The position numbers and the translations under genes were made by a program. A stretch of DNA of 64,000 nucleotides. Origin: Azolla caroliniana. Taxonomy: Eukaryota; Plantae; Polypodiophyta. Below the pieces are notes generated by a model that did no database searches, was not told the origin of the DNA, and saw nothing but the letters and a program-made list of their open reading frames with translations. This document shows positions 841 to 23,126 of the stretch, one piece after another (the first letter of the stretch is position 1; the number at the start of each line of letters is the position of its first letter). The DNA lies in NCBI GenBank assembly GCA_043228905.1, contig JBHGNT010000022.1:7874001-7938000 (forward strand), in the 5' to 3' direction.

Positions 841-1028
841 ACACGCAAAAAAAAGGAAAGAAAAAGGTGTCGGATTAAGGCACGGATAGGAACGAGTCGG
901 ATTGACGCAAGTCCGACTCCGAGGGAAACGATGACGAGTCTTCGAGAGCGAAGTCCGTGTCGGCTAAGAAAGCCTCAACTTCGGCTAATGAGCAATTACG
1001 CAGATCAACCCGCTAGAAGAACCCTTTT

Positions 1029-2514
1029 GTGTGGTTCAGTTACAACGAGTACATGGCGCATCACTATGCGTACATGACGCGTGTAACGGAAGTGCGTGAG
1101 CCGGAGTGCCTTGCAGAAGCGGTGAAGGACTCGAATTGGCGTGCCGCAATGGAGGAAGAGATGTGCGCATTAGCGGAAAATGACACTTGGGACCTGGTTG
1201 ACACATCGAAGGGTGTGAAGCCGATCGAATGCAGGTGGGTGTACAAGGTCAAGTACAACACCGACGGATCGGTCAACCGATACAAGGCCCGGTTAGTAGC
1301 AAAAGGCTACGCGTAGAAACACGGCATTGACTACGATGAGACATTTGTGCCGGTCGCGAAGATGACGACCGCCCGTGTTTTGCTCGCAGTAGCTGCGGCA
1401 AAGGGGTGGCACTTACATAAGATGGATGTAAAGAATGCATTCCTACAAGGTGAGCTTGAGGAACAGGTATAGATGGCCCAACCCCCCGGATTTCACTCCG
1501 GAACGAACACTTCGGCGGTGTGCCGATGGAAGAAGTCCCTTTACGGCCTAAAGCAAGCCCCGCGTGCCTGGGCTTTGCGATGTCGAAATCGGACTCCTCA
1601 CTGTTCATCTGGAAAGGTCGACTCGGGACGGTTAGTATTCTACTTTATGCTGATGACTTGGTCATCACTGGCGCTGACCTAAATGAAATAAACCGCGTGA
1701 AGCTCTAGCTTGCAGCATCATTCGATATGAAGGATCTGGGGGATCTTCATTACTTCCTCGGGATCGAAGTGATCCGCACCCCCGAAGGCATATTGTTCAG
1801 GCAACGACATTACATGCTGAGTATGCTCTTCAAATTCGGGATGGCCGACTGTAAGACCGTCTTGACTCCTCTGGATAGAACTGTCAAGCTTCGCCCTGAT
1901 TCTGGAAAGGTATGCGACCCGATGAGGTTCCAGCAGATAGTCAGAAGCCTTATATACTTGACCATCAGTCGACCAGATCTCAGCTACCCGGTCAAGATGA
2001 TTAGTCAATTTATGTCGCGACCGACCGAGGAGCACCTTTAGTGCACACAACGCGTACTCAGGTACATTAGTGGCACTAAGGACCGGGGGCTACTATATCG
2101 GGCTGATACTGCCACCCAGTTGGTCAGTTTCACCGATGCTGATTGGGCCGGAAACGCTGGCAATCGTTGATCCATGTCTGATTTCGCGTTCTCTCTCAGG
2201 AGTGTCGCGATCGCGTGGATTAGCAAGAAGCAACCGACTGTTGCGCTATTGAGCACCGAAGGCGAGTATAGAGGAGCTGCAGTCGCGACATGCGAAGCCA
2301 TATGGTTGAAGCGGCTACTTTAGGACCTGCAAGTGGAGGTATCCAATCCAACGACAATCTACTATGACAACGTTAGCAACATCCAGCTAGCTAAGAACCC
2401 CGTCTTCCATGCTCGGACTACGCACATTTAGGTGCACTACCATTTCGTCCGTGAGCGTGTCCTCTCTAGTGAAGTCGAACTTCAGTATGTTGACGTGCTG
2501 AACTTGAGGGGGAG
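1029..2514 (+). pseudogene. Copia A reverse transcriptase / RNase H remnant
   Basis: ORF fragments 1029-1316, 1473-1708 and 1727-2041 carry copia RT/RH motifs. Multiple TAG/TGA stops and small deletions relative to element C (near 1570 and 2490). Confidence 0.9.
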
Positions 2515-2599
2515 AGACGTTCCGGAAGACGCAGACCACGACGTCGAGTCAGATGATGAATTCAATCTCGGACCGACTGAAGAAGCCGAGGGCGGACCC

Positions 2600-3213
2600 T
2601 GTTAGGAAACAGGTCACTCCTGATGGGAAGTGAGAAGAACAGTACTGATGAGCAAACTCGGCCGTCGGATGATGAGTACCCGGCAACGGAAGACCCGGTG
2701 AGAACCGGATGACGAGTGCCCGGAAAGATCCGGATGAGGCAAGCCCGGTGAGGAGCGCTCACCGGATGAAGGGACATATTCATAAATATGTCTTTGAGAG
2801 TCCTTTGGGGCTATATTTGTAAATAGCCAAAAAGTCATATTATTATAAATATGACTTAGGGCATAAGAGAAAGTAGTGGTCATTCTTGTTGGTGCAAGAA
2901 GAGACGCGTAACTATGTATAGAGAGAGAGCGAGAGAGGAAGAGGTTGTTGCCTCTGTTGTAACCGCCTCCTGTGGTGAAGATCATGAGCACGAGGTCGTT
3001 GCCTCCGTGAGCTCACTGTTGTAATCATTGTGATATAGTGATAGTTTGAAGTGTGTGGGCTGCCGTGGTTTTTCCCTAGATTGGGTTTTTTCCACGTTAA
3101 CATCCTGTGTACTCTTCTCTCCATTGTGTCGTGCTTTCATTCCCGTTTTCTGCGTTTGATTCTAGGCTCGGTTGTGGCCGAGCGTTGTTCATCGGAGCGA
3201 GTAGTTCCTGACA
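2600..3213 (+). repeat. 5' LTR of element B (614 bp)
   Basis: TGTTAGG...CCTGACA, followed by the PBS. Confidence 0.95.
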
Positions 3214-3216
3214 AAG

Positions 3217-3228
3217 TGGTATCAGAGC
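3217..3228 (+). promoter_or_regulatory. Primer-binding site complementary to initiator tRNA-Met
   Basis: TGGTATCAGAGC 3 nt after the LTR end; canonical plant copia PBS. Confidence 0.9.
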
Positions 3229-3241
3229 GAAACGACAGAAA

Positions 3242-6200
3242 ATGGACGAATCGTTGGGCGGCATGTTCAAGCTCACCGGCTCCAACTATTCAGTGTGGAA
3301 GTCGAAGATGAGGGACATGCTCGTGGTTAAAGATCTTTGGTTGCCGGTTCAGTTTGGGGACAAGAGATCAGACAAAATCGATGCCGCAATATGGGAGGTG
3401 ATGCATATAAAGACAACGGCATACATACGGTGCTTCATCGACATGAACCTATACAACAACTTCAATGAAGAGAGCAAGGCTCATGAGCTCTGGGAGAAGA
3501 TCAACATTATGTTTTAGAACAAAAATGTTGTTAATCAGGTTTCGGTATTCCGGAAGCTAGTAACACTCCGGTACCAAGATGGCTCCAGCATGGTGGAGCA
3601 CATGAATGCCTTCCAAGGGGCTGATCCACTAGGAAACATCATTGGAAGTACCTCTCGCCGATGAGGTACTAGCACTACTCCTGCTCGGTTCCCTCCCAGA
3701 TAGCTGGGAGACGTTGGTTGTCACCTTGGGCAACGCCGGGCCGGAAGGGAAACAGTTATCCCTAGTGAGAGGGAAATCGAGCTTGCTAGATGTAGAGGTG
3801 CGTCGGAAAGATAAGGATACGAGCTCCGACTCCAAAGCGCTCCTTACCGAATCGGAACGCGGAAGACAAAGGAACCGTAGCCCCCAGAACCAGGAAAAGT
3901 CGGGGACACGGTCAAAGTCAAGGGGGAGGCCTACTTGCTTCTATTGCGGCAAGCCGGGACACTTCCAGAAAAACTGTCGGCACATTGGAAAAGACAAGGA
4001 ATCCGACGGCACCGATTCGAATCTGACTCCGGACCGGAACGACAAAGACCGGAGGGGGCCGGACCGGAAGGGAACGACGGCAATCGCGGCAATTGAAGAA
4101 GAGTTAATGCTCATCACTGAGGAGAGTGAGCTAAACCTTGCCGACGACGAGATGACCTGGGTGGTCGACTCCGGAGCATCGTTCCACCTTACCCCGGATC
4201 GGAAATGCTTCTCATCCTACACAGTCGGTGATCACGATTGTGTCCGGATGGGGAATGAAGGTACATGCTGAATTGTCGGCATAGGAGACGTGTGGTTGAC
4301 AACACCAACCGGATGCAAGCTGTTGCTGAAGGATGTCCGACACGTTCCAGAGGTTTGTCTGAACCTGATATCAGCCAGTCGGCTAGATGATGAAGGCTAC
4401 ACGGGTAGCATCCGGAACATTGTCATGAAGTTCAGCAAAGGGAGCCTGATTGTGGCTCGGGCCCGGAAGCTAAACACGATGTACCTGATGAATGCTCGGC
4501 TATCCTCGGAGGAAGTGAACGTGGTATCCGACACTACCGGTGAGCTATGGCACAAGAGGCTGTGTCACATGAGCGAGAAGGGGATGAAGAGGCTTGCAGA
4601 AGACAACCTCATTCCAGTGAAGAACGTGCACTTGGAGAAGTGCATTGATTGTCTAGCCGGTAAGCAAAATTGGACCTCCTTCCGACCAAGGACACCGATG
4701 AGACGTAATGCACCACTGGAGTTGGTGCATACTGATGTATGTCAAGTGGACACGAAGTCACATGCCGGATCGCAGTACTTCGTGACGTTCATAGATGACC
4801 ACAGCCAGAAGCTGTGGGCCACACCGTTGAAGACGAAGGATCAGGTGCTATCCGTCTTCAAAGAGCTCCACGCGAGAGTGGAAAGAGAGACCGGCTGGAA
4901 GCTGAAGGTGGTTCGAGCAGATAACGGAGGTGAATACCGGGGGCAGTTTGAGGAGTACTGTCGCTCGAAGGGAATTTGGCTCGAATTTACTGTGCCGAAG
5001 ACGCCAGAACTAAACGGACTGGTCGAGAGGATGAACCGGACCATAATGGAGAGGCTCCGGAGTATGCTGGCGCATGCAAAACTACCGAAGAAGTTTTGGG
5101 CTGAGGCACTGTCGACGACGACATATGTGATAAACAGATCACCCTTAGTGCCCTTGGACGGAGACACGCCGCAGAGAGTATGGACCGGTAAGGAAGTGTC
5201 CTACCTGCATCTGAAGGTGTTCGGGTGTCTCGCGTACGTGCATGTAGCTAAGGACCGGAGAGGAAAGTTAGATCCAAAGACTCGGCCATGCATATTCCTC
5301 GGTTACGGCGACGATGAGTTCGGCTACCGAGTGTGGGACCTGGTCGACAAGAAGGTATTCCGGAGTTGAGATAATATCTTCATGGAGGACAAGACGCTCG
5401 CCGACTGGGAGTCGGAGAAGACGATAATGAACTCCGAGTCGACCGGTAAGGATCGATTCTACGATGAGCAGACCCAACTAGCAAGAGACCGATTAGCACT
5501 CAAGGAAGCAACCGGTTACAGTGAGGATACCGAACCGGCAGAAGAAGAAGTAGAGGAAGCTGAAACCGGAACCGGCCAAGACCCCGAATCGGATTCGGAT
5601 GAAGAGCAAATGGAGGAGCCGGTTACCGAAGCCCAAAGACGGAGATATCCTCTCAAAGTGAGAAGGCCCCTCCGAAGATTTCCGGATTCAGAGCATGTGC
5701 TGCTGACCGATGAGGGAGAGCCAGAAAGCTTCGAAGAAGCGAAGGAAGACACCCACAGCCGCAAATGGTTAAGTGCCATGCAGGATGAGATGGATTCCCT
5801 GCATGAGAACCATACGTACGAATTGGTGGAGTTGCCGAAAGGAATGCGGGCATGCCGAAACAAGTGGGTGTACAAGTTGAAACTGGGAGATGCCGGCAAT
5901 CCCCCTAGATACAAAGCCAGGATCATGGTGAAGGGGTTCCAGCAGAAGAAGGGCGTGGACTTTGACGAGATATTTGCCCCGGTAGTAAAGATGACCTCCA
6001 TCCGGACGGTGCTGAGTATAGCAGCAAGCATGGACCTCGAGGTAGAGCAGTTGGACGTGAAGAGGACATTCCTTCACGGTGACCTCGAAGAGGAGATCTA
6101 CATGCAGCAATTGGAAGGATTCGTGGAGAAAGGGAAGGAGCACCTGGTTTGCCGGTTGAAGAAGAGCCTATATGGACTGAAGCAGGCTCCCCGACAATGG

Positions 6201-7289
6201 TACCGGAAGTTCAACTCCTTCATGACCGATCAAGGGTACCACAAGACGCAGGCCGATCACTGCGTGTTTGTGAAGAAGTTCGAAGGAGGCGACTTCCTGA
6301 TACTCCTTCTGTACGTGGACGACATGTTGATCGTCAGACATGACCAAGCCAAAATATGGATGCTAAAGAAGGCTCTCAACCGGACCTTCTCAATGAAAGA
6401 GTTGAGTCCGGCAAGACAGATGCTGGGGATGCATATTATCCGGGACCGGTCAATGAAGCAATTGTGGTTGTCACAGGAGAAGTACGTGACAAAGGTGCTT
6501 CAGCGGTTCAACATGTCAGATGCAAAACCGGTCGGATCGACACTCCTGACAAACTGCAGGTTATCTGGTAAGCAAAGCCCGAAGACGAAAGTAGAGAAGG
6601 CGGATATGATGAAGGTTCCATATGCCTCTGTTGTCGGGAGCTTAATGTACGCAATGGTGTGTACCCGACCGGATATAGGATACGTAGTTGGAGTGGTGAG
6701 CCGGTTCATGAGCAATCCCGGCAAGGAGCACTGGAACGCGGTCAAATGGATACTCCGGTACTTGAAGGGCACTTCGAATATGTGTCTCTGATTCGGCTCC
6801 GGAAAACCTCAACTTGACGGTTTTACCGATTCAGACATGTCGGCTGATGTGGATACCAGCCGGTCTACATCCGGGTATGTAATGACATATGTCGGGGGAG
6901 TTGTTTCGTGGTAGTCGAGGCTGCAGAAGACGGTTGCGTTGTCAACCACGGAGGCGGAGTACATGGCGGTTGTGGAAGCCGGCAAGGAAATATTATGGAA
7001 GAAGGACTTCATCGGAGAGCTCCGTATCCGGCAAGATGAATACCGGCTCTATTGCGACAGTCAATGTGCCATCCACCTTGCTAAGAATGCGGCCTACCAT
7101 TTCCGGACGAAGCATATCAAGCGAAGGTATCACTGGATCCAGGATAGAGTAGATGACCAGGAGTTCGCGCTAACGAAGATCGACACAGCTGAGAACGGGT
7201 CATATATGCTGACCAAAGTACTGATACCTGACAAGTTGGATGCATGTTGGAAGCGGATCGGACTAGTAAGACATCCCATGCCGGAGTGA
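3242..7289 (+). pseudogene. Element B gag-pol polyprotein, disrupted
   Basis: Zn knuckle CFYCGKPGHFQKNC, protease WVVDSGAS, integrase HHCC and D,D35E region (LVHTDV, VRADNGGEY, LVERMNRT), RT LLYVDDML. Stops at 3515, 4269, 5367, 6789 and 6912, and a frameshift near 3620. Confidence 0.92.
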
Positions 7290-7299
7290 AGGGGGAGTT

Positions 7300-8039
7300 T
7301 GTTAGGAAAGAGGTCCCTCGGGATGGGAAGTGAGAAGAACAGTACTGATGAGCAAACTCGGATGGGAAACCGGATGATGAGTAACCGGCAACGGAAGACC
7401 CGGTGAGAACCGGATGATGAGTACCAGGCAACGGAAGACCCGGTGAGAACCGGATGACGAGTACCCGACAACGGAAGACCCAGTGAGAACCGGATGACGA
7501 GTTCCCGGCAACAGAAGACCCGGTGAGAACCGGATGACGAGTGCCCGGCAAGATCTGGATGATGCAGGCCCGGTGAGGAGCGCTCACCGGATGAAGGGAC
7601 ATATTCGTAAATATGTCTCTGAGAGTCCTTTGGGGCTATATTTGTAAATAGCCGAAAAGTCATATTAGTATAAATATGACTTAGGCAATAAGAGAGAGTA
7701 GTGGTCATTCTTGTTGGTGCAAGAAGAGATGCGTAACTATATACAGAGAGAGAGCGAGAGAGGAAGAGGTTGTTGCCTTTGTTGTAACTGCCGCCTGTGG
7801 CGAAGATCGTGAGCACCGAGGTTGTTGCCTCCGTGAGCTCACTGTTGTAATCATTGTGATATAGTGATAGTTTGCAGTTTGTGGGCTGCCGTGGTTTTTC
7901 CCTAGTTTGGGTTTTTTCCACGTTAACATCCTGTGTACTCTTCTCTCCATTGTGTTGTGATTTCATTCCCGTTTTCTGCGTTTGATTCTAGGCTCGGTTG
8001 TGGCCGAGCGTTGTTCATCGGAGCGAGTAGTTCCTGATA
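7300..8039 (+). repeat. 3' LTR of element B (740 bp)
   Basis: Follows the PPT; ends ...cctgaTA (CA to TA) before the TSD GACCC. Confidence 0.95.
7371..7550 (+). repeat. 40-bp tandem repeat (4 full copies plus a partial) in U3 of the B 3' LTR
   Basis: Unit cggatgatgagtacccggcaacggaagacccggtgagaac starts at 7371, 7411, 7451 and 7491. The 5' LTR has only one full copy. Confidence 0.95.
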
Positions 8040-8431
8040 GACCCATGGAAGATTCTGAATGTAGACATAAGGGGGGCAGTCGAAAAAAAGAGCCGAAGCC
8101 AACCAAGGGCGAGAAGACCGAGGACGAGTTGGAGACAACCAACTCGGACGAGAGCGAAAACCGATCGGAGGAAGCCGAGTCAGTTCGGATCTTTGATTCA
8201 GATACACTGAATCAACCAAGGGCCAAGTGGAAGAGAAGGCAGTAGAAGAGGCGCCAACACCACAAAAGCAAGGAAGCTGAGATGGGCCGTGTGAGCAGAC
8301 AAGCCGACCGAAAGGGTCGAGGTGCGCGGAATCGAACAGGTCGAGGAGCGCGCGCGAGGCGTGAAGCCAGGAGGAACTGGAGAGCAGATCTGGAAGAGCA
8401 GATGGAACCTCAAGTTGAGCTTGAGGGGGAG

Positions 8432-8874
8432 TGTTGAGATACAAGCTCAACATTGGCCAGATCGGCTGTGCAAGCCGAGAACCAGATCCGTTGGGGCCGA
8501 TCAGTTAGGCCGGACCGATGCGTAAAACGGGTGCGTAAACCAGTACGCAAACTGGTGCGTAACGAGAAGCCGTAGCGGTGTGTAAACCACGAGGCTGTTG
8601 GAAATATATTCTGCGTAGGAATATATTTTGGTAATTAGCGTAGAGCTCAGTTATGAGCATTGAAGTACGTGTCACTACTTCTGTCAATTCGTATGGACTT
8701 GTATAAAAGTGCTCACTGAGCACATCCTTTGTACAGATCGAGTAATATTTTGAATTAAGTTCTCTGTGTTCTCTCTTGGTCTCTCCTGCGTATTGTGTAT
8801 ACCCTAAGCTCTCCATTAAACCTGCGTATTCTCTGTGTTCAGTTTTCTATTGCTTCCGCACATAATCTTTTACA
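8432..8874 (+). repeat. 3' LTR of copia A
   Basis: TGTTGAG...TTTTACA; homologous to the C LTRs; TATA-like tataaaag near 8702. Confidence 0.9.
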
Positions 8875-9546: not shown

Positions 9547-9945
9547 TGTTGAGAGACAAGCTCAACATCGGCCGGATCGGCTGAAGAAGCCGAGGACCGG
9601 ATCGGTTGGGACCGATCGGTTAGGCCGAGTGCATAAACCAGGAGGCCGTTAGGAAAGATATTCCGTGAGGAATATATTTGGGAGTTAGTGTAGGAGCTCT
9701 TAAAGAGCATTGAAGTACGGTCAGTACTTCGGTCAGTGCTTCGAGGACTTGTATAAAAGTGTTCATGGAACACACATATGTATAGAGTGTGGTGAATAGA
9801 GATTTTAATATAGTTCTTGTGTTTTCTCTCTCTCACTCTCTCTGTCTCTCCCGTGTATACTGCGTAAGCTCAAGCTCTCCATTAAACCTAAGTGTTCTTC
9901 CTTCTGTTTTGTCTTCATACTTGCTTCCGCACGCTACTTTCTACA
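9547..9945 (+). repeat. 5' LTR of element C
   Basis: TGTTGAG...TTCTACA directly followed by tggtatcagagc; 14 bp longer than the 3' LTR because of a short tandem duplication. Confidence 0.95.
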
Positions 9946-10313
9946 TGGTATCAGAGCGCGAGGGTTGAGAACCTCTCTGCAGCCGACACAGCTTGACGAA
10001 GAAGAACAAAAAGAACGCTGGATAGGGGCATGGCGAGCTCGCTTCCAACAGAGAAGCTCGACAGAACCAACTACGCGTCTTGGTCTTACAAGATGCACTA
10101 GTACCTGCTCGGGCACGGCTACTAGAGTTATGTCGAAGGAGCTAATGACGCGGCACCCGAATCAACACACAAAGACTTCCCGTCGTGGGAGCAATCGGCG
10201 AGCAGGGTATTATACTGCTTCGCGTCATGTGTGGGCGAACAACTATTGAGCTATGTTCGGGATGCAAAGACGCCGAAGGGTGCGTGGGAAAATCTGAAGA
10301 AGATTTTTGCCGC

Positions 10314-11006
10314 TGTCGCGCCTTTCGGCTCTGGATCATTGCGTGAGTCGGGTGGGAACCGCCGAGGTTTTGGACTAGGAGGAAGAGGAATACCACTTAA
10401 GGCTAGTTATGAATAGTAGAAAGAGAAGTAAGATAGCAATCTCGTGAATCCCACGAGTTAAGTGTATTTAAAACAATATTTAGATTATAAGAGTAATTTA
10501 GATGGCAAAATTCGTGAATCCCACGAATATATTAGATTGATCAATCCTTGTATATTAATCAACAACCTTATACATATTTCTCTCCTCCTTATATAAAGAT
10601 GGAAGAGGCTAAGCATGGCTTCATGCTTTTTCACCAAAAGTGTCCATGCACACTAAATGTGCATGTGATGCTTTGTCATTTCCTAAGTATAGGGCTCATG
10701 CACTCTAGATGTGCATGAGTCACTTTTAATGTCACGTGTAAATAAAATATTCACACCCTAAAGAATACGTGATTTTTACCTTTTAATAAAGGTAAAATCT
10801 TATACGTGTTAAATCTATATGTATAACACTAAAGATAAGTTATTACAATGGTAAAGTTGAAGTTTATCTATGTGGAGGTGCAGGGTTCGAATCTTGCCCT
10901 ATGCACGTGATAAATATTTTGATATATTATTTATTTATTTATATGTATCTAAAATCGGATATATTATTTTATGGTTTTCACGTAGTGTGTGGAATACACT
11001 ACGACA
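10314..11006 (-). repeat. LTR-a of element D (divergent body, U3 tip like LTR-b)
   Basis: TGTCGCG...ACGACA on the plus strand; the last ~105 bp match LTR-b and the remainder is clearly diverged. Confidence 0.92.
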
Positions 11007-11012
11007 CTACTG

Positions 11013-11789
11013 TGTCGCGCCTTTCGGCTCTGAATCGTTGCGTGAGTCGGGTGGGAACCACTAAGGTTTTGGACTAGGAGAAAGAAGAATATGAGATGAG
11101 GCTAGTAATGAATAGATTATTAGAAAGAGAGATAGAAATTTCGTGAATCCCACGAGTGTATTGTATTTGATTAATCAATATTTAGATAAGAATATGTATT
11201 TAGATTGAAAGAAAGATATAAGAAACTTGTAAATCCCACAAGTATAGATTATATTATTTTCGTGAATCCCACGATTATATGAATCGGTTGGTGTTTTCGG
11301 AAATATATCCAATTTCCAAATATTTCACACACCTTTTACATTGTGCTCCTCATCCTTATATAGAGATGAGAGAGTCTTTTCCAACCCATGCGTTTTCTCT
11401 AACTATAGACTCCATGCTTTTTGTATAGATAGACTATATGCTTTATCTAAAGTGATCATGCTTTTTCTAACTTGTGCGTTTTTTATCAACTATAGCGTTC
11501 ATGCACGCTAGATGTGCATGCGTAGCTTTTTCTTTTAGCATGCGTTTTCTTTTAACTAAAGTTTATCCTAGGTGAACTAAGCTTTCTATGTGGAACATCT
11601 ATTTTTGAACACTAATGAAATGCTAGTGTAATGGTAAGACATTACATTATTAACATGGAGGTGCAAGGTTTGAATCCTACCCTATGCACGCGATAAATAT
11701 TTTGATATATTATTTATTTATTTATATGTATCTAAAATCGGATATATTATTTTATGGTTTTCACGTAGTGTGTGGAATACACTACGACA
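11013..11789 (-). repeat. LTR-b (3' LTR) of element D
   Basis: Adjacent to the PPT (minus-strand ggagggggcgag); body nearly identical to LTR-c. Confidence 0.95.
11624..11677 (+). promoter_or_regulatory. tRNA-like Pol III A box / B box module inside the D LTR (also 10841-10894 and 18056-18109)
   Basis: A box TAGTGTAATGG and B box GGTTTGAATCC (GGTTCGAATCT in LTR-a), starts 43 nt apart, with a T-arm-like stem GCAAG/CTTGC in LTR-c. Confidence 0.6.
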
Positions 11790-14700
11790 CTCGCCCCCTC
11801 CGAACCCGCACATCCTCCGGTATGTGCCGAAGTTCTCGATTCCTCATATCCGTCTTCACCCAAAGCTTCCTCCGATTCTCCCCTTATGTCGACTATGAGT
11901 TGTAATTCACTTTCTTCGCTTCCCGCATCACCGTGGTCTTCGTCCGATTGCTCCTCATTGTCGGCCTTGGCTTGGATCACATAGGGTTTGTCGTCGGTCC
12001 GCTTCTTGAAAATCTTCACCCGCTTCCCGGCTATAGGCACTCGTAGTATTGTTCCATCCAACTCGGACAGTCGGTACGTTGCGTTGTCGAAGACTTTCCG
12101 AACCTCGTATGGCCCGAACCACCTTTTCACGAATTTCCGCATCGTTGTATGTTGATGGTCCAAACTACTGTCATAGACGATCACCCAATCTCCTTCTTCA
12201 ATCCTCCTCGGTCGTAGTCGGTGCTTTGTGTCGAACCGGCTTTTGTTCCGAAACCGTGCTTCTTGTTGTCGGCGTATTGCTTCCGCTATGTCTGCCGGTC
12301 TTCCCTCTAGTTGTCGTATCCGAACTGCTAGTAGTTCTTCCCGGCTCATCTCTTCCTTCCACGGTAGCACTGTCCATGTTGCGATCGCTGTTTCCGTCGG
12401 CATTACCGGTGCTTGTCCGGTCATGAGTTCTGCCGGCATGTAACTGGTTACGGAACTATGCGTCGTCCGATCCGCCCATAGTGCATACGGAAGCATCTGC
12501 GGCCAGTCCTTCACCTTTCCATCGCATGCCTTCGCAAGTGCTTTCACGATCGGACTATGTCCTCGTTCGATTTTCCCATTGGCCTCCGGATTGTATGCCG
12601 TTGTCAACGATAACCGAACTCCGTGTTTGGCGAAGAATCCCCTAGCTTTGTCCGAGTCGAGTTCTCCCCAGTCCGCAATCACTTGCCCTACCCACCCGTA
12701 CCTGCAAAATACTTCCTCCAAAAGAAATTGGCATACCGCGGAACATGTTTTCCTCTGAAGCGCTCGACCTTCTACTTGATTCGTGAGATCTTCCCAAGCT
12801 AATACCAAGTATTTCTTTTGTCCGATCCCGGTCGGCATGGCCACTATGTCGACCATCCACTTGAAGTTGATTGTCGATGAGAATGTCGGATGTAACTCAT
12901 CTCGATGCCGAACCCCGGAGTAGACTTGACATTTCTCACAGCTTTCCGTCAACTCCGCGACATCTTTGTACATTTTCTTCCACCGATATTTTTGCTTGAT
13001 TCTTCACAAATGTTGCCCATGTTCCTCGGTGTCCAGCCCAATCGGATTCGTGAAACTCGGACATTATCCGGTTTCGTTGCTCTTTTGTCCCGACTACTCG
13101 AAGTGGTATACCATCCGGTCTTTTCTGCGCCCTCCATATTAATCCGTTTTCCAAGAAGAACTTTTGGACTTGCCTCTTCTTCCTTCAGATCTTGGCTCTT
13201 CTTCCTTTATCGTTTGTTGAATCCTCGGCCTCTTGTAACATCTTTCCGATCATCAAGCTTTCTCCCTCGTATTCTTCTTCCTGGAATTCTCGGATTACGT
13301 TCATTCGGCATATGTGCTCCGACGCGAAGTAGTCTTCAGAAACTTCTTCATTATCCGATTCGGTTATGTCGTCTCCGAACCGAGCCCTTGGTAACATATC
13401 CGCTACCGCGTTGTCCTTCCCCGAGATGTGTCGAACCTCCGGATTAAGCGATTTGACATATGCAACCCACCTTAGCATAGCTACATCCGGTATCGTACAA
13501 CACCGCATCATCTCGAGTATCGGAAGACAATCCGTCTCGATCACCACTTCGGCTCCGATCAAATAATCCCTATCCGATTTTATCGCCGACACGACTCCCC
13601 ACAGTTCTGTTTTGACTTGTGCATATCCACGTTGCCTTTCGTTGAGAACCTTTGCTCTGAATCGGATCGGATATCGCGAACCATCCGAGTCGGCTTGATT
13701 GATGACCCACCCGATACCGGTTGGACTTGTATCAACCGTTACTATGATCAGTCGGTCGTAGCTCGGCTTCTTAAGTGCTTCCGCCCTCCGAGGTGTCTTC
13801 TTCAATTTCTTCATGGCTTTGGTGTGTTCCGGTTTCCATTCGAATTTCTTACCTTTCCGCAACAAGTGGTAGAGCGGGTCCGCTATATGTGCATAGTGCG
13901 GAATCCATATGTGATAGAATGCACATGCACCGAGAAACCTTCGGACTTCGGATGTTGACTCACATACTTCCTCCATAGCTTGAATCACATCGATCTTTGT
14001 TGGTGACAGTCTTCGGCCGTAGGGCCCACATAGATTTCCGACCACCAATATTTCTTCTTGCCCGAATGCCGACTTCTCCCCGGAAAGTGTTAGGTGCACA
14101 TCTTCTAGCTTTCGCAACACTTTCTTGTAATCATGAATATGGTCGACCACGAACTTTCGGCATCCCCGATCATCCATAGTCTCATCTTTTTCTTCTACCG
14201 CGCATCCTTTCATCGGAATGTTATCGAGGAACGACATCGTTATCTCTGGAATGCAGTCTCGAAGCACCTTGTTCATCGCGTTCATCATATGAGCAACCGA
14301 GTTTGTCGCTCCTTGTGGTAGTCTGCACATTCGGACTAATCCTATCGGTGTTCGCATGGTTGTGATGTCTCGGCTCTCCACGGCTAGTTGGAATTGGTCA
14401 TACCCCGAGTATAGGTCTCCGATGGAGTATATCGCACGACCGGCAAAAGCTTCCGCAAATTCGTCCACTATCGGACCGACTCCCGAGTTCCAGATCGTGA
14501 CCTTATTCACCGGTTGCAAGTCTTGGATAAATCGATTCACCGGGAGTGACCCATTCTTCTTCGGAACCGTAAACCATCGATTTGAGTACGGAGCAGTTGA
14601 TGGCTCTATAATCCCCATCGCCACCTTCTCCTTGAGCAAGTCAATGACTTTCGGAATATGCGCTCATGGCACCGAAATCGGCTTCAGGTTCCACGGTACA

Positions 14701-17405
14701 TGGTCAATCGTGAAGATCACCATCGGCTCCACTATTCTCGGATCAACGCACCCTATCTCCCTTGATGTAAATGCAAACGCTTTGTCGTGTTGCTCCAACA
14801 TCTCGCGAAACTGTTCTTCTTCTTTTTGTAATAGGAACCCACCTCCACCGATCCGAAGTTTCTTCCGGGTCTCATCTGTGAAGGCATGTCCGATATCCGC
14901 GGACTTCTGAAGTATCGGATCTCCCGAGACTTCTTTCCTCTTTTGTTCGCTATCGGCGGGTAGTGGTACCGCGGCCGGTTTCACCTTCTTCTCCATGGTC
15001 TTGTATTTTGTACTTACCATTGCTTCTTCTTTGCGGAGCGTATCCAGCTCCATTTTCGCAATGATCTCGTACATCTCGACCGATTCCACCGGGACTACCC
15101 GGTTCCCTTGGCTTTTATCTTCCGCTAGCTCTTCAAGTCGTTGTAGCGTGCTCCCATAGAACACTTCTTCGACTATCCCCACGATTTCTTCATCTTCTTT
15201 TATTATTGATGACGACCGCAACTTATCCTCCACTTTTCGGTATCCTTTCTTCAATCCTCCGGTCACTGTCGTGTACGTAGATGCCCCATCCGGACCGATT
15301 CGTACATGTTTTGCTCGGAGAGTTTTCTTCCTGTGTGGGGTATCAGGGCTTCTCGGACTATCACTTCCCCACTCTACAACAGTCCGCTTAAAAAATCCAT
15401 TCTCACTTGGGACAAGAGTTCCCTCTTGTTCCTTTCGTGATTTGCCGGCACCGTTAGGATTTGGACGGATTTCCCACCGTTTTGGCTCCGAATTCACGCA
15501 AAAGCCGCACCGCTATCGAGCACCTTCATCTCCATCCGTGATGCCGTGATAAAGGGTTGGCCGAGGATGACGGAATGTGAACCCTCATCTTGCACGAAGA
15601 AATTTTGGTCGATCTCGACATCCCCGATCGTCACCGTCACATCCGGACAAGCCGCAAATAGATCTTCTGTTGCTTTGGTGGCCGCCCGAATCTTCCATCC
15701 ATGGTTGGTGTTAATAGGCCACTTCCCCTTCCGGTAGAACTCCTTGGACATCAAGTTGATCTCTGATCCGTGATCAATCAATGCTAGCACGGGTTCTTTG
15801 ATGTTGCCGATTCGGACCGGAGTCTCCGTAGTCGCGCGTGCCCAATGTGGCCTTGTATAGTGGGAGTTTGGAATTTCGTCCTCCACTTCGGTGTCGTTCA
15901 TTAAAACGGTGTTCGCATTCACCCTTGGAGCATTTTCCTCCGTACTTTGTCCTTTTCGCTTCACGAGATCCACGAGAAGATCGTGGAACTCCTTCTTTGC
16001 TATTCCGAGTAGATCCCGAAGCGAGAAATCCACCCGGCTATCCAAGATCCTTTCCTTGAACACTCTTTTCAAGTCGGTTTGTTGTTCTATGTCCGAGGCG
16101 AGCTTGAATGCCGGAGTCGCCTTTTCTTTTCCCTTACCTCTGGAGTTCCAGCTTTCCGGTATCTTTGATGGCCCGGCCGCATCCTCCATGCGTCGTCGTT
16201 TCTCGTCCACATACACCTCATGCAATTGACACAGGGCACTCCCATCCCGTAGCTTCCCGGACGCCTTCCGCGGTGCTTCGGATCTCGTTGGAGTCGGTTT
16301 TCTCGGTGTTTTCTAGAACTTCTGGCCAAAAAGATGTCTTTGCTCTCGATGACTCCCCGACACATATTCCCACGGTTGTCGCATAGTTTCTTCTTGCCGC
16401 CAATTCCTCCTCGAGCACCTTCTTCATGCCGCCTTTCCGGAAGTTCGGTCGGAGTGGCTTCCGAGAGTCCATCGAACGAATCCGGTTTCCCTCGTAGTAG
16501 ATGAGATCCCGCCGTAGCGCCTCCTTATGCTTGTCGCAATCCCTCCGATCGTGTTCGGCGCTATCGCACCATATGCACCGTCGGTCCGTATACTTGGAGT
16601 TTGTGGGGCGGTCATCCGACTTCTTCATCATTGCGATCTTCAGATTCTCCATCTCCTTTAATAGTTCCTCCACCGTAGATGCATCAATCCCCTTCTCGAT
16701 TGTAGTCTCCCGAGCCCTCAGTTGATGGTCTTCCAATCCGGTTCTCGGTTTCGGAATCGGTTCCGAAACCCTCTTTTCCTCGTTGGCAAGCCATTGCCCC
16801 CTCTTTGTGTATCGCGCGACGATATCCCGCACGCTTTCCCATGTTTCGGTGAGGCCACTCTCCGTGGTCGTGTCCTCCAAGAGCACTCCGAGATCTTTCC
16901 GGTCCCGGACGTCCACGGCTCGCAAGAACATGATCACCTTGTCCGATACGAGGATAGCTTGATCTCTCGCGGACAACCTCCCGAACCGGCTTTCGAATGC
17001 CGAAAACACATCAACGACCTTCAATCCCTTGTCCGGCGTCTCCACCCAATCTTCGAATCCCCTTCTCGTCGCCTTGGAGGAATCCTCAATGGCGAACGTC
17101 CTCTTTAGCTCTTCTTCAAACGCCTCCCATGTCGGATTTTGCTGTCGTAGCCCATGGATGCTTGCTTGAAGCCCGTCGGTCGCCACCCGGTTGACGGACG
17201 TCACTTGCAGTCCTTCCAATATTCCGCACCGTAGCATCTCCTCCTTGTAATCCCGAAGATACCGCGACACGTCTTTCCCGTTGAATTGCCCGTTTCGTTG
17301 CACGAGCCGCTCCACTGATGCCGATATCTCCGACATCGCGCGTTGTTCTTGTAGCATGCGCTCGAACATCATCATCATGTTGCTAGCCTCCGGTTGATTT
17401 TCCAT
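11747..17405 (-). pseudogene. Element D gag-pol, split into six ORF segments
   Basis: gag FNGKDVSRYL with knuckle CIWCDSAEHDRRDC; protease ALIDHGSEINLMS; RT DLYSGYDQ / PQGATNS / FLDN; RH TVDTSPTGIG, ETDCLP; IN H...H...CEKC, WMVDIV, NPEANGKIERG and GPY module WFGPYEV. Confidence 0.9.
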
Positions 17406-17422
17406 CTCCTTGCCACCCGGTT

Positions 17423-17440
17423 TTCACGTCGGGTTCACCA
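17423..17440 (-). promoter_or_regulatory. Primer-binding site complementary to tRNA-Trp
   Basis: The plus strand reads TTCACGTCGGGTTCACCA, which I recognise as the 3' end of plant cytosolic tRNA-Trp(CCA); it lies 4 nt from LTR-c. Confidence 0.8.
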
Positions 17441-17444
17441 ACTG

Positions 17445-18216
17445 TGTCGCGCCTTTCGGCTCTGAATCGTTGCATGAGTCGGGTGGGAACCACTAAGGTT
17501 TTGGACTAGGAGAAAGAAGAATATGAGATGAGGCTAGTAATGAATAGATTATTAGAAAGAGAGATAGAAATTTCGTGAATCCCACGAGTGTATTGTATTT
17601 GATTAATCAATATTTAGATAAGAATATGTATTTAGATTGAAAGAAAGATATAAGAAACTTGTAAATCCCACAAGTATAGATTATATTATTTTCGTGAATC
17701 CCACGATTATATGAATCGGTTGGTGTTTTCGGAAATATATCCAATTTCCAAATATTTCACACACCTTTTACATTGTGCTCCTCATCCTTATATAGAGATG
17801 AGAGAGTCTTTTCCAACCCATGCGTTTTCTCTAACTATAGACTCCATGCTTTTTGTATAGATAGACTATATGCTTTATCTAAAGTGATCATGCTTTTTCT
17901 AACTTGTGCGTTTTTTATCAACTATAGCGTTCATGCACGCTAGATGTGCATGCGTAGCTTTTTCTTTTAGCATGCGTTTTCTTTTAACTAAAGTTTATCC
18001 TAGGTGAACTAAGCTTTCTATGTGGAACATCTATTTTTGAACACTAATGAAATGCTAGTGTAATGGTAAGACATTACATTATTAACATGGAGGTGCAAGG
18101 TTTGAATCTTGCCCTACGCATGTTATATACATTTTAATATTTTCTACTATTTATTCATATTTATTAAATCGGTACTTTATAATTTTTTCAAGTAGTGTAC
18201 GAAATACACTACGACA
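17445..18216 (-). repeat. LTR-c (5' LTR) of element D
   Basis: Adjacent to the PBS; body matches LTR-b, while the last ~105 bp differ from both other LTRs. Confidence 0.95.
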
Positions 18217-21200
18217 CCGTGAGCACCATAGCCAGGAAGCTTCAACTCTGACAGGAGTTGAGCAACCTACGACAACCCGACTTGTCGGTGGCGGACTATA
18301 CCTCGAAGATCAAGGATATCTGCGACTCCCTCGCCTCCATAGAGGTGAACATCGAGGAGAGCGAGATGGTCCAGATCTGTCTCGGAGGTTTGGCGTCGAA
18401 GTTCGGAGCATTCCGGATGGCTGTGTGTACCCGGGAGAATACGTCGTCCTTTTTTGACTTACAGTCAATGCTCCTGGTAGAGGAGAACCACGCGGGTGCG
18501 TCTAGATGCACACACACCGACAGCAGAATGTTGTACACGGAGGGAGATAGGTCCCGTGGACGTGGAGGACGAGGCGAGTCGGCGCACAATGGAGGCGGCC
18601 AACGAGATCAAGGAAGAAGGCACCGAAGTGATGCCGACAGCAACTCCGAACCCTCCGGAAACAGGGGGAGTTGAAGCGATGAGAACTGGCAAGGGAAGGC
18701 CATCGCGGAGTGTTGGTACTGTGGCAAGAAAGGCCACAGGGAAAGTGAGTGTTGGAAGAAGCGCGCCGATTCGGAGAGAACTGATTCCGGAAATGGCTCC
18801 GGACACACCGACAAGCGAAATCGGCAGCGATCGCACTACGCCGAAGACTCTGGGAGAGCCGGAGAAGGGTCTGCCTTCGTGACGAAACACAAAGCAAACT
18901 CAATGAAACAGACCACCCCGAGATCGGACGAGGTGTGGTACGTAGACTCCGACGCGTCAAACCACATGACGAGCCATAAGGAGTGGTTCTCGTACCTTGA
19001 AAAACCGATACAACTTGGAGTAATCACAACTGGAGACGACACTCCGCATCTGATCGCGAATATCGGAGAAGTTCCCCTTAGCCATGTCGGGCAGAAAGGG
19101 AAACTCATGAACGTGTTGCACGTTCTGACAATCATGAAGAACTTGGTCTCGGTCGGACAGATCGTTGACCAAGGGATGGAGGTTTGGTTTACACACCTCG
19201 GGTGCTTCATTGAGGAAGAAGGCCGTGTGATTGCGCAAGGGCGCAGAGACGGGAGGATGTTCATCCTTGACTCCACTGACGGCGGCACCGCAATGTTCGC
19301 GAAGGGAAGAAAAACCGAATCAGACATCGACTTGTGGCACAAGCGGATAGGCCACGTCAACTACCAGCGGCTTCAAGATCTGCAATCGAAACAGGTAGTG
19401 TTCGGATTGCCCAAATTTAGTGGCCGAAAGGCACAAATTTGTGAAGCTTGCCAGCTCGGGAAGCAACACCGACTTCCTTTCCCCAACGAGCGAAACCGAA
19501 GCCGGAACAAGCTCGACCTTATACACTCCGATGGATGGGGGCTGGCACAAAACATTAGTCTTGGCGGGAGCCGATATTTCGTCTCCTTCATCGACGACCA
19601 CACGTGACACACGTGGATCTACCTCATTGAGAGGAAGAGCGAAGTCTTCGACTGCTTTCGGGACCTCAAAGGGTTCGTGGAAACGGAAACGAGACGAAAG
19701 ATCAAGTGCCTGCGGTCGGATGGCGGGAAAGAGTACTTCTCCGGTCAATTCAACGGCTATCTACAACAAATGGGAATTCAGCGCGAATTCAGTTGTGGCC
19801 GAGAGGAAGAATCGGTCAGTTGTGGAAGCGGCACGGGCAATGCTGGAGGAGAAGCGCTTGCCCAAGTTCTACTGGGCCGAGGCGGTAAGGACCGCGGTAT
19901 ACATCCAGAACCGGATCGGAGACAAAGTGTCGGCGCACGAGCTATATTTCGGAACGAAGCCGAACTTGCGACACTTGAGGGTGTTCGATAGCATTGCGTA
20001 TGTGCATGTACCGAAGGAGAAAAGGAGGAAGATGGATGCAAAGGCCGAGAAATGCATCTTGGTCGGTTACTCGGACGAGCAGAAGGGTTATAAGTGCTAT
20101 AACCCTCGCACCAAACAAGCGCGTGTTAGCCGCGACGTTGTGTTTGACGAGTCCGCGTCCTGGTACTAGCCCCCGACTCTGAACCCCGACTCCAATCCAA
20201 GCTCTGACGATGAGGTCAGCGAGGCCGAGATGCCTCTGGATGAGCCCGAAATCGAGACCTGCGAAGAGAGTCCGATTTCACTCCGTTTAAGCGGACCAAT
20301 AGGATGACTGAGTCGGTACGACCAGTCCGATGAAGAGCCGGCGAGTAGTGGAAACTCGGCCATGCATTCCCCGCGCAGGAAGCCGAGGAGACGGCTTACG
20401 CGCAAAGAGAAAGGGAAGAAGAAGGTGTCGGATTCCGGCACAGAAAGGAACGAGTCAGACCGACGCGAGTCCGACTCCGAGGGAACCGGTGACGGGTCTT
20501 TAAAGGTGAAGTCCACGTCGACCGAGAAGGCCTCGACATCGGCTAATGCGAGGTTACGCCAATCTACCCGCCAGAAGAATCTTGTTTTGCGGTTCGGATA
20601 CAACGAGTACATGGCGCATCATTATGCGTACATGACCCATGTAGCGGAAGTGCATGAGCCGGAGAGCTACACAGAAGCGGCTAAAGACGCGAATTGGAGT
20701 GCCGCAATGGAGGAAGAGATGCACGCATTGGCGGAGAACGAGACCTGGGACCTGGTTGACGCACCAACAGGGGTAAAACCGATTGGGTGTAGGTGGGTGT
20801 ACAAGGTCAAGTACAACACCGATGGCTCCGTTAACCGGTACAAGGATCGGCTAGTGGCAAAGGGCTATGCGCAGAAACACGGCATCGACTACGATGAGAC
20901 GTTTGCGCCGGTCGTGAAAATGACGACCGTCCATGTTTTGCTCGCAGTAGCTGCGGCGAAGGGGTGGCACTTACATCAGATGGATGTAAAGAATGCATTC
21001 TTGCAAGGTGACCTTGAGGAACAGGTGTACATGGTACAACCCCTCGGATTTCACTCAGGAACGAACTCCTCGGCAGTATGGCGACTGAAGAAGTCCCTTT
21101 TACGGACTGAAGCAAGCCCCGCGTGCCTAGAACGCGAAGATCACGCAACAACTGCGTCGGATGGGCTTCGTCACGTCAAAATCGGACTCTTCCCTGTTCA

Positions 21201-22741
21201 TCCGGAAAGGTCGACTCGGACCGGTTAGTATTTTACTATATGTTGATGACTTGGTCATCATCGGCGCCGACCTAGGTGAAATCGACCGCGTGAAGCTCCA
21301 GCTTGCGGCATCGTTCGAAATGAAGGATCTGGGGGACCTTCAGTACTTCCTTGGGATCGAAGTGATCCGTACCCCCGAAGGCATATTGATCAGCCAACGT
21401 CATTACGTGTTGAATATGCTCTTCAAATTCGGGATGGCCAACTGTAAGTCCGTCTCGACTCCTCTGGACAGAACCGTCAAGCTTCGTCCCGATACGGGAA
21501 AGGTATGCGACGCGACGAGGTTCCGACAAATTGTCGGAAGCTTCATATACTTGACCATCACTCGGCCTGACCTCAGTTATCCGGTCGGAGTGCTCAGTCA
21601 GTTCATGGCGCAACCTACCAAGGAGCATCTTCAGTGTGCGCAACGCATACTTCGGTATGTCAATGGCACTAAGGACCGGGGACTGCTATATCGAACCGGT
21701 GAAGCCGCGCAGTTAGTCGGCTACACCGATGCTGATTGGGCTGGCACCGCCGCCGATCGCCGATCCACGTCTGGATACGCGTTCTCCCTCGGGAGTGCCG
21801 CAATCGCGTGGAGCAGTAAGAAGCAGCCAACAGTTGCACTATCGAGCACCGAAGTTGAGTACCGAGGAGCGGCTGTCGCGACATGCGAAACCATATGGTT
21901 GAAACGACTACTTAAGGACCTGCAAGAGGAGGTGTTAGATCCGACGACGATCTACTGCGACAACCTCAGCAGCATCCAGCTCGCGAAAAACCCCGTTTTC
22001 CACGCACGGACCAAGCACATTGAGGTGCACTACCATTTCGTCCGTGAGCATGTCCTTTCCGGTGAAGTCGAACTTCAGTACGTTCCGATGGATCGGCAGA
22101 TTGCCGACATCTTCACTAAGCCCCTTGGTCTGGACAAGTTGCGGCAATTCTCCGGTGCGCTCGGATTGCGTCACCTCGACGTGCCAAACTTGAGGGGGAG
22201 AACAGTCCCGAATGACCAAGCAAAGCAGCAGGAAAGGAGCGGAAACCGCAACACCGAGTCCGTTGACTCGGTTGTTGACTCGGTTGTCGAGTTCGACTTC
22301 GGATCGGCTGACGAAGCTGAGGGCAGAGCCGCAGAAAAGTCTGGAAGCGGACAGAAGGGGAGCAGCCGAAGGAGAAAGCCGAAGCCAGCCATTCATGGGG
22401 AAGATGACGCCATCGAGGGCGAGAAAACCGAAGACGAGTTGGAGACAGCCAACTCGGATGAGAGCGAAAACCGATCGGAGGTAGCCGAGTTGGTTCGGAT
22501 GTTTGATTCAGATACACTGAATCAACCGAGGCCCAAGCGGAAGAAAAGGCAGCAGGAGAAGCGTCAACACCGCAACAGCAGAAGAGCTGATAAGGGCCAC
22601 GTGAGCAGACAAGCCGACTGGAAGGGTCGAAGCGCGCGGAGTCGAACAGGTCGAGGAGCGCGAGCGAGGCGTGAAGCCAAGAGGAACCGGAGTTGTGAGC
22701 CCGAGGATCCCGAAGAGCCTCGAGTTGAGCTTGAGGGGGAG

Positions 22742-23126
22742 TGTTGAGAGACAAGCTCAACATCGGCCAGATCGGCTGAAGAAGCCGAGGACCAGATCGG
22801 TTAGGCCGAGTGCGTAAACCGGGAGGCCGTTAGGAAAGATATTCCGTGAGGAATATATTTGGGAGTTAGTGTAGGAGCTCTTAAAGAGCATTGAAGTACG
22901 GTCAGTACTTCGGTCAGTCCTTCGAGGACTTGTATAAAAGTGTTCATGGAACACACATATGTATAGAGTGTGGTGAATAGAGATTTTAATATAGTTCTTG
23001 TGTTTTCTCTCTCTCACTCTCTCTGTCTCTCCCGTGTATACTGCGTAAGCTCAAGCTCTCCATTAAACCTGAGTGTTCTTCCTTCTGTTCTGTCTTCATA
23101 CTTGCTTCCGCACGCTACTTTCTACA
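22742..23126 (+). repeat. 3' LTR of element C
   Basis: After the PPT; few differences from the 5' LTR, mostly transitions. Confidence 0.95.

Follow-up and report, generated by a model that had tools for sequence, protein, structure and literature searches.

A three-LTR Ty3/gypsy element of Azolla caroliniana with a chromosomal 2-LTR junction, probably captured by a resident LTR

Circular DNAs of retrotransposons that carry two long terminal repeats (LTRs), known as 2-LTR circles, are usually treated as end products and as markers of recent reverse transcription. Here we describe element D, a Ty3/gypsy retrotransposon in a 64,000-nt stretch of Azolla caroliniana DNA (GenBank assembly GCA_043228905.1, contig JBHGNT010000022.1, positions 7,874,001 to 7,938,000 of the forward strand; hereafter the window), which has three LTRs and an LTR-LTR junction within a single target-site duplication (TSD). 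Re-entry of reverse-transcribed complementary DNA (cDNA) by recombination with resident copies is known for Ty1 and Tf2, and in classical yeast genetics a circular plasmid integrates ends-in by a single crossover or by gap repair. As in ends-in plasmid integration, the insert in element D lies between two reciprocal hybrids, and information from the chromosome is retained to either side of the break; unlike there, the homology is short and poor, that is, homeologous.

LTR-LTR junctions serve as markers of extrachromosomal circular DNA, including that of active elements in plants (PMC9324142; PMC4751563). Element D shares with 2-LTR circles a head-to-tail U5|U3 junction that keeps the unprocessed terminal nucleotides of both cDNA ends, but its junction is chromosomal and lies inside a TSD, together with a third LTR and reciprocal LTR chimeras. 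Integrase-independent insertion has been reviewed for plants (PMC12786077), and Tf1 inserts at resident Tf2 elements by integrase-independent, Rad52-dependent single-strand annealing, giving tandems with one shared LTR (PMC11042837). Entry into the genome via homology to a resident element instead of integrase, with hybrid elements at the target, is common to element D and the cDNA recombination of Tf1, Tf2 and Ty1; those events, however, involve linear cDNA and yield tandems with a shared LTR or simple conversions, with no LTR-LTR junction. Complex or tandem plant elements with three LTRs have been described (PMC11899658; bioRxiv 10.1101/452573, which cites the earlier models of Devos 2002 and Sabot & Schulman 2007). 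Like element D, they hold three LTRs in one TSD, and these are not pairwise equidistant, but they contain two interiors and a shared middle LTR, whereas element D has one interior and two abutting LTRs. Drosophila population data contain unexplained LTR-LTR tandem junction reads (PMC5932611); there, as here, adjacent LTRs are not explained by unequal exchange, but the Drosophila junctions are known from short reads alone, without locus anatomy or mechanism. In the literature covered, which did not include older subscription papers, no description was found of a chromosomal locus in which the junction of a 2-LTR circle is preserved alongside reciprocal recombinant LTRs.

Anatomy of element D and its LTR-LTR junction

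Coordinates are positions in the window; element D lies on the minus strand, and positions within LTRs are called in element orientation. Read in this direction, the directly observed order is LTR-c (17445-18216, 772 nt), the internal region (11790-17444, 5655 nt), LTR-b (11013-11789, 777 nt), the hexamer CAGTAG (11007-11012) and LTR-a (10314-11006, 693 nt), i.e. three LTRs and one interior, exactly the layout and coordinates given in a preliminary description of the window. Each LTR starts with TGTCG and ends with CGACA. Adjoining LTR-c, the CAGT spacer (17441-17444) and the primer-binding site (PBS) occupy 17423-17444; the PBS starts TGGTGAACCCGACG (TGGTGAACCCG), its first bases being TGG, 4 nt after LTR-c. 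At the other end of the interior, the polypurine tract (PPT) GGAGGGGGCG (11792-11801) is followed by AG (11790-11791) and then by LTR-b. The element thus has the TG...CA ends, PBS, PPT 2 nt before the LTR and 4-bp TSD of a Ty3/gypsy LTR retrotransposon. It has a single internal region, not the two interiors around one shared LTR of a tandem element, and no second copy of its family is present in the window, which an interior query matches once.

The composition of the junction was likewise observed directly. In a direct-repeat analysis, the identity between the neighbourhoods of LTR-b and LTR-c extends 4 nt beyond the U5 end (11009-11012 equals 17441-17444), and that between LTR-a and LTR-b extends 2 nt beyond the U3 start (11007-11008 equals 11790-11791); the very next base differs in both comparisons. 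The hexamer is therefore exactly the LTR-to-PBS spacer CAGT joined to the PPT-to-LTR spacer AG, as had been proposed from a first reading. Relatives L001-L003 share the PPT-AG-LTR arrangement, and their first spacer is CAAG or CAAGT, so that the CAGT of the junction is element D's own variant. A random hexamer would equal the predicted one with a chance of 1/4096, and the window has a single match to the 18-nt junction pattern, where 0.08 would be expected even if 3 mismatches were tolerated.

The U5 end of one LTR consequently meets the U3 start of the next head to tail, with only spacer bases between them, as in a 2-LTR junction. In the scheme of reverse transcription, such bases are the unprocessed ends of full-length linear cDNA, left at the primer-removal site and the PPT cleavage site. 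For both spacers to be joined, completed cDNA must have been ligated end to end, be it intramolecularly, as in a 2-LTR circle, or between two molecules. Since two linear cDNAs dimerised by their ends would leave an identical junction, we infer the circle itself from its chromosomal copy.

The whole arrangement is flanked by CCGC on the left (10310-10313, plus strand) and CCGT on the right (18217-18220, plus strand), within the gag of a Copia element (9547-23126, plus strand) that element D interrupts. Both flanks were mapped on the uninterrupted, paralogous gag of another Copia element in the window: the left flank aligns through 52851, and the right flank, extrapolated to its first base, begins at 52848. 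The two flanks thus overlap by exactly these 4 nt, as a genuine duplication should, and removal of one copy preserves the gag frame. The 4-bp TSD of the preliminary description is thus a true duplication but an imperfect one, with a single C-to-T transition at a CpG in the right copy relative to the left.

Reciprocal mosaic of the LTRs and subfamilies of the element

The three LTRs were compared in one alignment, of which the informative columns were counted. LTR-a and LTR-b agree against LTR-c at 33 columns, all within columns 15-106, while LTR-b and LTR-c agree against LTR-a at 305 columns, all within columns 120-780. Bases private to LTR-b were found at columns 100, 112 and 114 (window 11691, 11679 and 11677), and the only base private to LTR-c, at column 771, is a CpG transition; outside columns 100-114 the pattern has no exceptions. 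Two tip types (T1 and T2, approximately 75% identical) and two body types (B1 and B2, approximately 68% identical and with many indels) can thus be distinguished, LTR-a being T1 + B1, LTR-b T1 + B2 and LTR-c T2 + B2. The LTR-a tip (the first ~106 nt) is near-identical to that of LTR-b, and the LTR-c body differs from that of LTR-b at 1 position in 658 nt; the two LTRs as a whole are 95.9% identical. The reciprocal chimerism and the single b/c body difference claimed earlier were therefore recovered, whereas LTR-b has three private positions and not the one reported.

A single in-register breakpoint is directly visible in both hybrids, at columns 106-120 (between window 10896 and 10902 in LTR-a, and between 18103 and 18109 in LTR-c), making them in-register reciprocal hybrids of the kind that ends-in integration produces. 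It falls in a 28-nt conserved core some 107-134 nt into the LTR, where no indel occurs, approximately 300 nt upstream of a TATA-like motif in U3 (as read from the alignment) and not at the U3/R boundary. One cycle of reverse transcription copies both LTRs from the same minus-strand template and so yields identical LTRs; given that mechanism, the difference between LTR-c and LTR-b over the whole tip would call for an event at the DNA level. LTR-b and LTR-c jointly differ from the majority of their family, as seen in Logan contigs, at 11281, 11335, 11422-11423 and 11607, which is expected if both bodies derive from one template. In the other LTR pairs of the window the differences are spread evenly, with no comparable clustering.

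All three positions private to LTR-b flank the switch, and there are none elsewhere in its 777 nt. Column 114 holds G in LTR-b and every T1-tipped relative, and A in LTR-c, LTR-a and every T2-group relative; because LTR-a carries the A of the T2 group, it changes lineage inside the core. The private alleles at columns 100 and 112 are absent from every relative sampled. Three private changes within 15 nt are odd if LTR-b is a mere bystander; sites private to LTR-b are expected under capture of a circle by a resident LTR, as a short heteroduplex or conversion tract with LTR-a and LTR-c both keeping the resident allele.

The relatives available for comparison are short-read metagenome assemblies of other genomes, possibly chimeric and 78-90% like the LTRs of element D, and they bear on plausibility only. 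The interiors of L001-L003 and L008 are 92-95% identical to that of element D, those of L001-L003 being intact; L004-L006 were retrieved with a B2-specific 25-mer. Trees were built separately for tip and body. The tip tree separates T1 (LTR-a, LTR-b and the 3' LTRs of L002 and L003) from T2 (LTR-c, the L002 5' LTR and L005) with support 100/99, and the body tree separates B2 (LTR-b, LTR-c, L004 and L005) from B1 (LTR-a, the L002 5' LTR, L001 and the T1-linked bodies) with support 100/100; the T1-linked bodies form a clade within B1 (99/97). T1 + B1 is represented by the 3' LTRs of L002 and L003 and by L009, which was typed from its match to LTR-a outside the trees, T2 + B1 by the L002 5' LTR, and T2 + B2 by L005. 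A third tip type with a long insertion is joined to B1 in L001 and to B2 in L004. T1 + B2 is represented by LTR-b of element D only.

Further mosaics were seen among these contigs. The two LTRs of L002 (603-1308 and 6979-7703) fall in tip groups T2 and T1, with bodies in different B1 sub-clades, and their flanks, ACGG and ACGC, agree at 3 of 4 positions; the contig is either chimeric or another recombinant element. L001 (5844-6649) and L004 (2739-3613) share the same odd tip, with its long insertion of GGCATACCGGCAAGGA-like repeats, on a B1 and a B2 body, respectively, so that shuffling of tips and bodies seems recurrent in the family unless these are assembly artefacts. In L003 (1-7230) an LTR-interior-LTR unit is followed by the start of the interior again, the usual path of a repeat collapsed in short-read assembly; a tandem or a 1-LTR circle could look alike. 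Near the end of L007 (2441-2764), the LTR core is present a second time, in inverted orientation.

Public sequence was checked in the Logan contigs of 20 runs from 12 studies, the best run containing 0.46 of the window's words, and window positions 10150-12150 were compared with the contigs of four runs. Thousands of contigs per run were placed on this interval, so repeated is the family. The B1 body (10418-10900) is present in all four runs, whereas the B2 body (~11155-11690) abounds in three of them, labelled organisms A and B, and is nearly absent from the organism C run; this pattern suggests that B2 is a subfamily restricted to certain lineages and amplified recently. In several contigs the sequence changes in register from one of these body types to the other at further conserved blocks, and mosaics are therefore common in the family.

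Protein searches found no annotated genome with element D's family and no copy closer than approximately 91%, which places the B2 subfamily's own genome outside the searched collections; exact-product look-ups of two open reading frames (ORFs) of element D gave no match. A search with the ORF crossing the junction returned just ordinary T1-tipped LTRs beside unrelated flanks (P0161 with L009, and P0162), and no second junction. The junction pattern had no match in viral contigs or the retrieved loci, nor had the pattern linking T1, core and B2 in genome contigs or the B2-specific pattern in genome and viral contigs; these collections are without plants, and the results are hence uninformative.

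Proposed capture of a 2-LTR circle and the alternatives

We consider the homology-directed capture, by a resident LTR, of a molecule bearing a 2-LTR junction to be the probable origin of element D. In a first step, an element of the family would have integrated normally into the Copia gag, creating the 4-bp duplication; it would then have been reduced to a solo LTR with a T2 tip and a B1 body, or have been full-length at the time of capture and have lost its interior afterwards. A related, defective element would next have produced unintegrated cDNA with T1 + B2 LTRs, whose blunt, unprocessed ends were ligated into a 2-LTR circle with the junction U5-CAGT|AG-U3. In a single, final homology-directed event, circle and resident LTR would have been united in register within the short conserved core some 107-134 nt into the LTR, either as a crossover or as a break repaired by copying once around the circle; both give the same product, and the sequence does not separate them. 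That product would consist of LTR-c (resident tip, circle body), the interior, the intact circle LTR-b, the junction and LTR-a (circle tip, resident body), all inside the old TSD. Under the best model LTR-b is the sole LTR carried intact from the circle.

The order of parts constrains such a history closely. With R the resident and L the circle LTR, one exchange, placed in the LTR after the junction, yields R-left/L-right, interior, L, junction, L-left/R-right. The observed order (LTR-c, interior, LTR-b, junction, LTR-a) has one solution, L being T1 + B2 and R being T2 + B1, and a b-type circle meeting a T2/B1 resident LTR, whose type we infer in this way, is the only one-step model that gives it. 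The resident combination occurs in a relative, as the L002 5' LTR is T2 + B1, and the LTR-a body is closest to the body of that same T2-tipped LTR (90%, versus 85-87%). Two variants were rejected: an exchange in the other circle LTR would place the junction before the interior, contrary to the observed order, and an a-type or c-type LTR as resident or circle would misplace LTR types relative to that order, unless recombination fell in the first 14 nt and a second conversion followed.

The age of the target site may bear on the same question. There are 17-18 CpGs per B2 body, with a single change between the bodies of LTR-b and LTR-c. For a TSD no older than the b/c pair, a change in its few CpGs would be mildly unexpected, an uncommon outcome by a rough estimate. 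With 1 of its 4 positions changed, at a CpG, against 1 of 658 between the b and c bodies, a greater age of the TSD than of the pair is weakly indicated.

Several observations weigh against capture, at least in its simplest form. A single crossover between a b-type circle and a diverged solo LTR, as originally suggested, accounts for the order, the reciprocal mosaic and the junction, but not as strict homologous recombination, for which the partners are too unlike. Tip and body were otherwise analysed separately, and for counting matches the resident LTR was represented by a column-wise proxy; this is approximately 57% identical to LTR-b when gaps are counted and 68-75% without gaps. At the core, exact runs are shorter than 12 nt, and 29 of the 36 columns 100-135 are identical, while U5 offers exact runs of 17-22 nt. 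Extended high-identity homology, as demanded for homologous integration, is thus lacking, and canonical homologous recombination, which would be expected in U5 instead, is strongly disfavoured. Break-directed homeologous repair fits better, and since homology is poor at the core and better in U5, the position of the switch more likely reflects where the break occurred. The core itself gave no match to a tRNA-derived sequence with ARAGORN or Rfam, and as a candidate hairpin break hotspot it forms only weak folds (z -1.0 to -2.2).

LTR-a is moreover patchy around the switch: columns 102 and 106 have the alleles of the circle, whereas column 100 and those from 112 onwards have the alleles of the resident LTR. 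This needs patchy mismatch repair or one extra or later mutation, and is an unexplained detail rather than support. A T1 + B2 LTR was not found outside element D, in a sample of just 2-3 B2-body LTRs, all from distant relatives; such a cDNA need not represent a subfamily, since copy-choice between co-packaged T1 + B1 and T2 + B2 RNAs could generate it in a single cycle. The preliminary description had named common, intact a-type and c-type LTR pairs, with LTR-b the unique mosaic, as the situation that would speak against it; both an a-like and a c-like combination do occur in relatives, which touches that situation without amounting to it. In an approximately unbiased (AU) test, a position of the LTR-a body beside the T1-linked bodies was still allowed (p = 0.35, not significant). 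Finally, the layout is that of the assembly, and no Logan contig (~85-140 nt) of the four runs bridges the junction, the tip/body switch or the flanks within 10150-12150.

Among the alternatives, one makes LTR-b the sole recombinant: a c-type (T2 + B2) circle would have joined an a-type (T1 + B1) solo LTR within the first 14 identical nt, with LTR-c, interior, a second c-type LTR, junction and LTR-a as the product, after which LTR-a converted the tip of the middle LTR. Its two partners have the advantage of occurring in relatives (T1 + B1 in L002, L003 and L009, T2 + B2 in L005), the 14 identical nt with which the LTRs begin exceed every exact run in the core, and the three changes private to LTR-b could have arisen by miscopying where a conversion tract ended. 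Two rare events would be required, however, the first with 14 nt of homology on one side only; the supposed error G at column 114 is the normal T1 allele, while LTR-a has that of the T2 group, and the LTR-a body is nearest to that of a T2-tipped LTR. We regard this course of events as quite unlikely.

Also distinctly improbable, in our estimate, is the insertion by integrase of a linear DNA of several parts (two cDNAs, or a cDNA and a free LTR-length fragment) in one step with its TSD, followed by deletion and conversion. End joining of two molecules would leave a circle-like junction, LTR-c and LTR-a have outer ends of the kind that integrase processing leaves, with a 4-bp TSD around the whole, and extrachromosomal recombination before integration has been proposed for three-LTR elements of rice (bioRxiv 10.1101/452573). 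Three to four steps would be needed, though, as the reciprocal mosaic is not explained without extra conversions, and the change in 1 of 4 TSD positions against 1 of 658 in the b/c bodies suggests, weakly because the site is a CpG, a TSD older than the LTR triplet.

An assembly or polishing artefact, in which the three-LTR layout or the LTR-b tip is not real, appears very improbable. The extreme repetition of the family, with thousands of short contigs per run, invites such errors, and no read or contig crossing the junctions turned up in the four runs. An assembler nevertheless has no reason to build a junction of exactly two biological spacers, nor would it be expected to produce in-register reciprocal chimeras of sequences 25-30% divergent together with a matching TSD. 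As for a tandem element (LTR-interior-LTR-interior-LTR) that lost its second interior, or two insertions at one target site, tandems of this kind occur commonly in both plants and yeasts (PMC11899658, PMC11042837, PMC5932611), but the deletion would have to run from the first PBS base to the last PPT base without microhomology at either end, and the junction, in which the double-insertion model of PMC5932611 predicts the target site, reads CAGTAG instead of CCGC (plus strand; GCGG in element orientation), so that the junction sequence effectively refutes an explanation to which we give a negligible probability.

Three other candidates were rejected outright. In a strand-transfer chimera the switch would lie in R, which it does not, and the two LTRs would not differ; if a read-through transcript of a circle had been reverse-transcribed, the LTRs should be doubled at either end; and for integrase insertion of LTR-c, interior and LTR-b beside LTR-a, the flanks ACGG and CAGT do not match.

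With capture of a 2-LTR circle as the preferred history, element D is best read as a variant of the known integrase-independent cDNA recombination, represented by one locus and with the homeologous exchange unexplained. If correct, it would be direct natural evidence, from a germline locus, that 2-LTR circles can return to chromosomes via host recombination, would give the integrase-independent pathways of yeasts a further substrate, and would provide a source of abutting LTR pairs, from which LTR-derived tandem repeats could develop. It would also be a warning for LTR-divergence dating, as the outer pair (LTR-c and LTR-a) and the pair flanking the interior (LTR-c and LTR-b, 95.9%) both give wrong ages. 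A broader proposition, which we hold to be unlikely, is that 2-LTR circles of this family re-enter repeatedly without integrase, via break-directed recombination at the LTR core, as a heritable second path of amplification; repeated re-entry would then give rise to LTR-LTR tandems and also exchange the tips and bodies of LTRs among subfamilies.

Interior of element D and its host

The order of pol domains (reverse transcriptase, RNase H, integrase) is that of Ty3/gypsy elements, and the interior is collinear with the intact pol of L002. Pfam models RVT_1 and RT_RNaseH_2 pass their curated cut-offs on the ORF at 13185-14639, the integrase-core match (rve) on the ORF at 11747-12973 scores 26.1 bits, below the cut-off of 32.6, and the gag-like part has a sub-threshold DUF4100 match of 27.3 bits versus a curated cut-off of 27.9. 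The nearest named proteins are from the liverwort Riccia, with approximately 50-65% identity over the integrase and just 28-32% for gag; those of Calypogeia (a liverwort) and Ceratopteris (a fern) are approximately 51-54% identical over the integrase. Judged by these matches, the host would probably be a land plant without seeds.

The interior is defective. Comparison with L002, whose gag and pol are intact, places frameshifts near 16230-16237 and 12990-13003, and in-frame stops break pol into ORFs of 277, 484 and 408 amino acids. Two frameshifts and several stops thus lie within 11790-17444, yet the b and c bodies differ at just 1 of 658 positions. Because these bodies are nearly identical despite the damaged interior, the defects were probably already present in the template RNA, that of a non-autonomous copy mobilised in trans.

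The four bases adjoining the LTR end are ACGG, in element orientation, at 18217-18220 (upstream of LTR-c), in L002 (599-602) and in L001 (6650-6653), which are unrelated insertions; this recurrence hints at a target-site preference of the family's integrase.

The host Copia element has LTRs at 9547-9945 and 22742-23126, which differ by 7 mismatches and one 14-nt indel. It is one of two related Copia elements (841-8861 and 9547-23126) that lie approximately 700 bp apart, each interrupted by another LTR element: the second by element D, and the first by an element with LTRs at 2666-3211 and 7491-8037. A 40-nt tandem repeat of 4.6 copies (7368-7551) extends across the start of the 3' LTR of that first interrupter.

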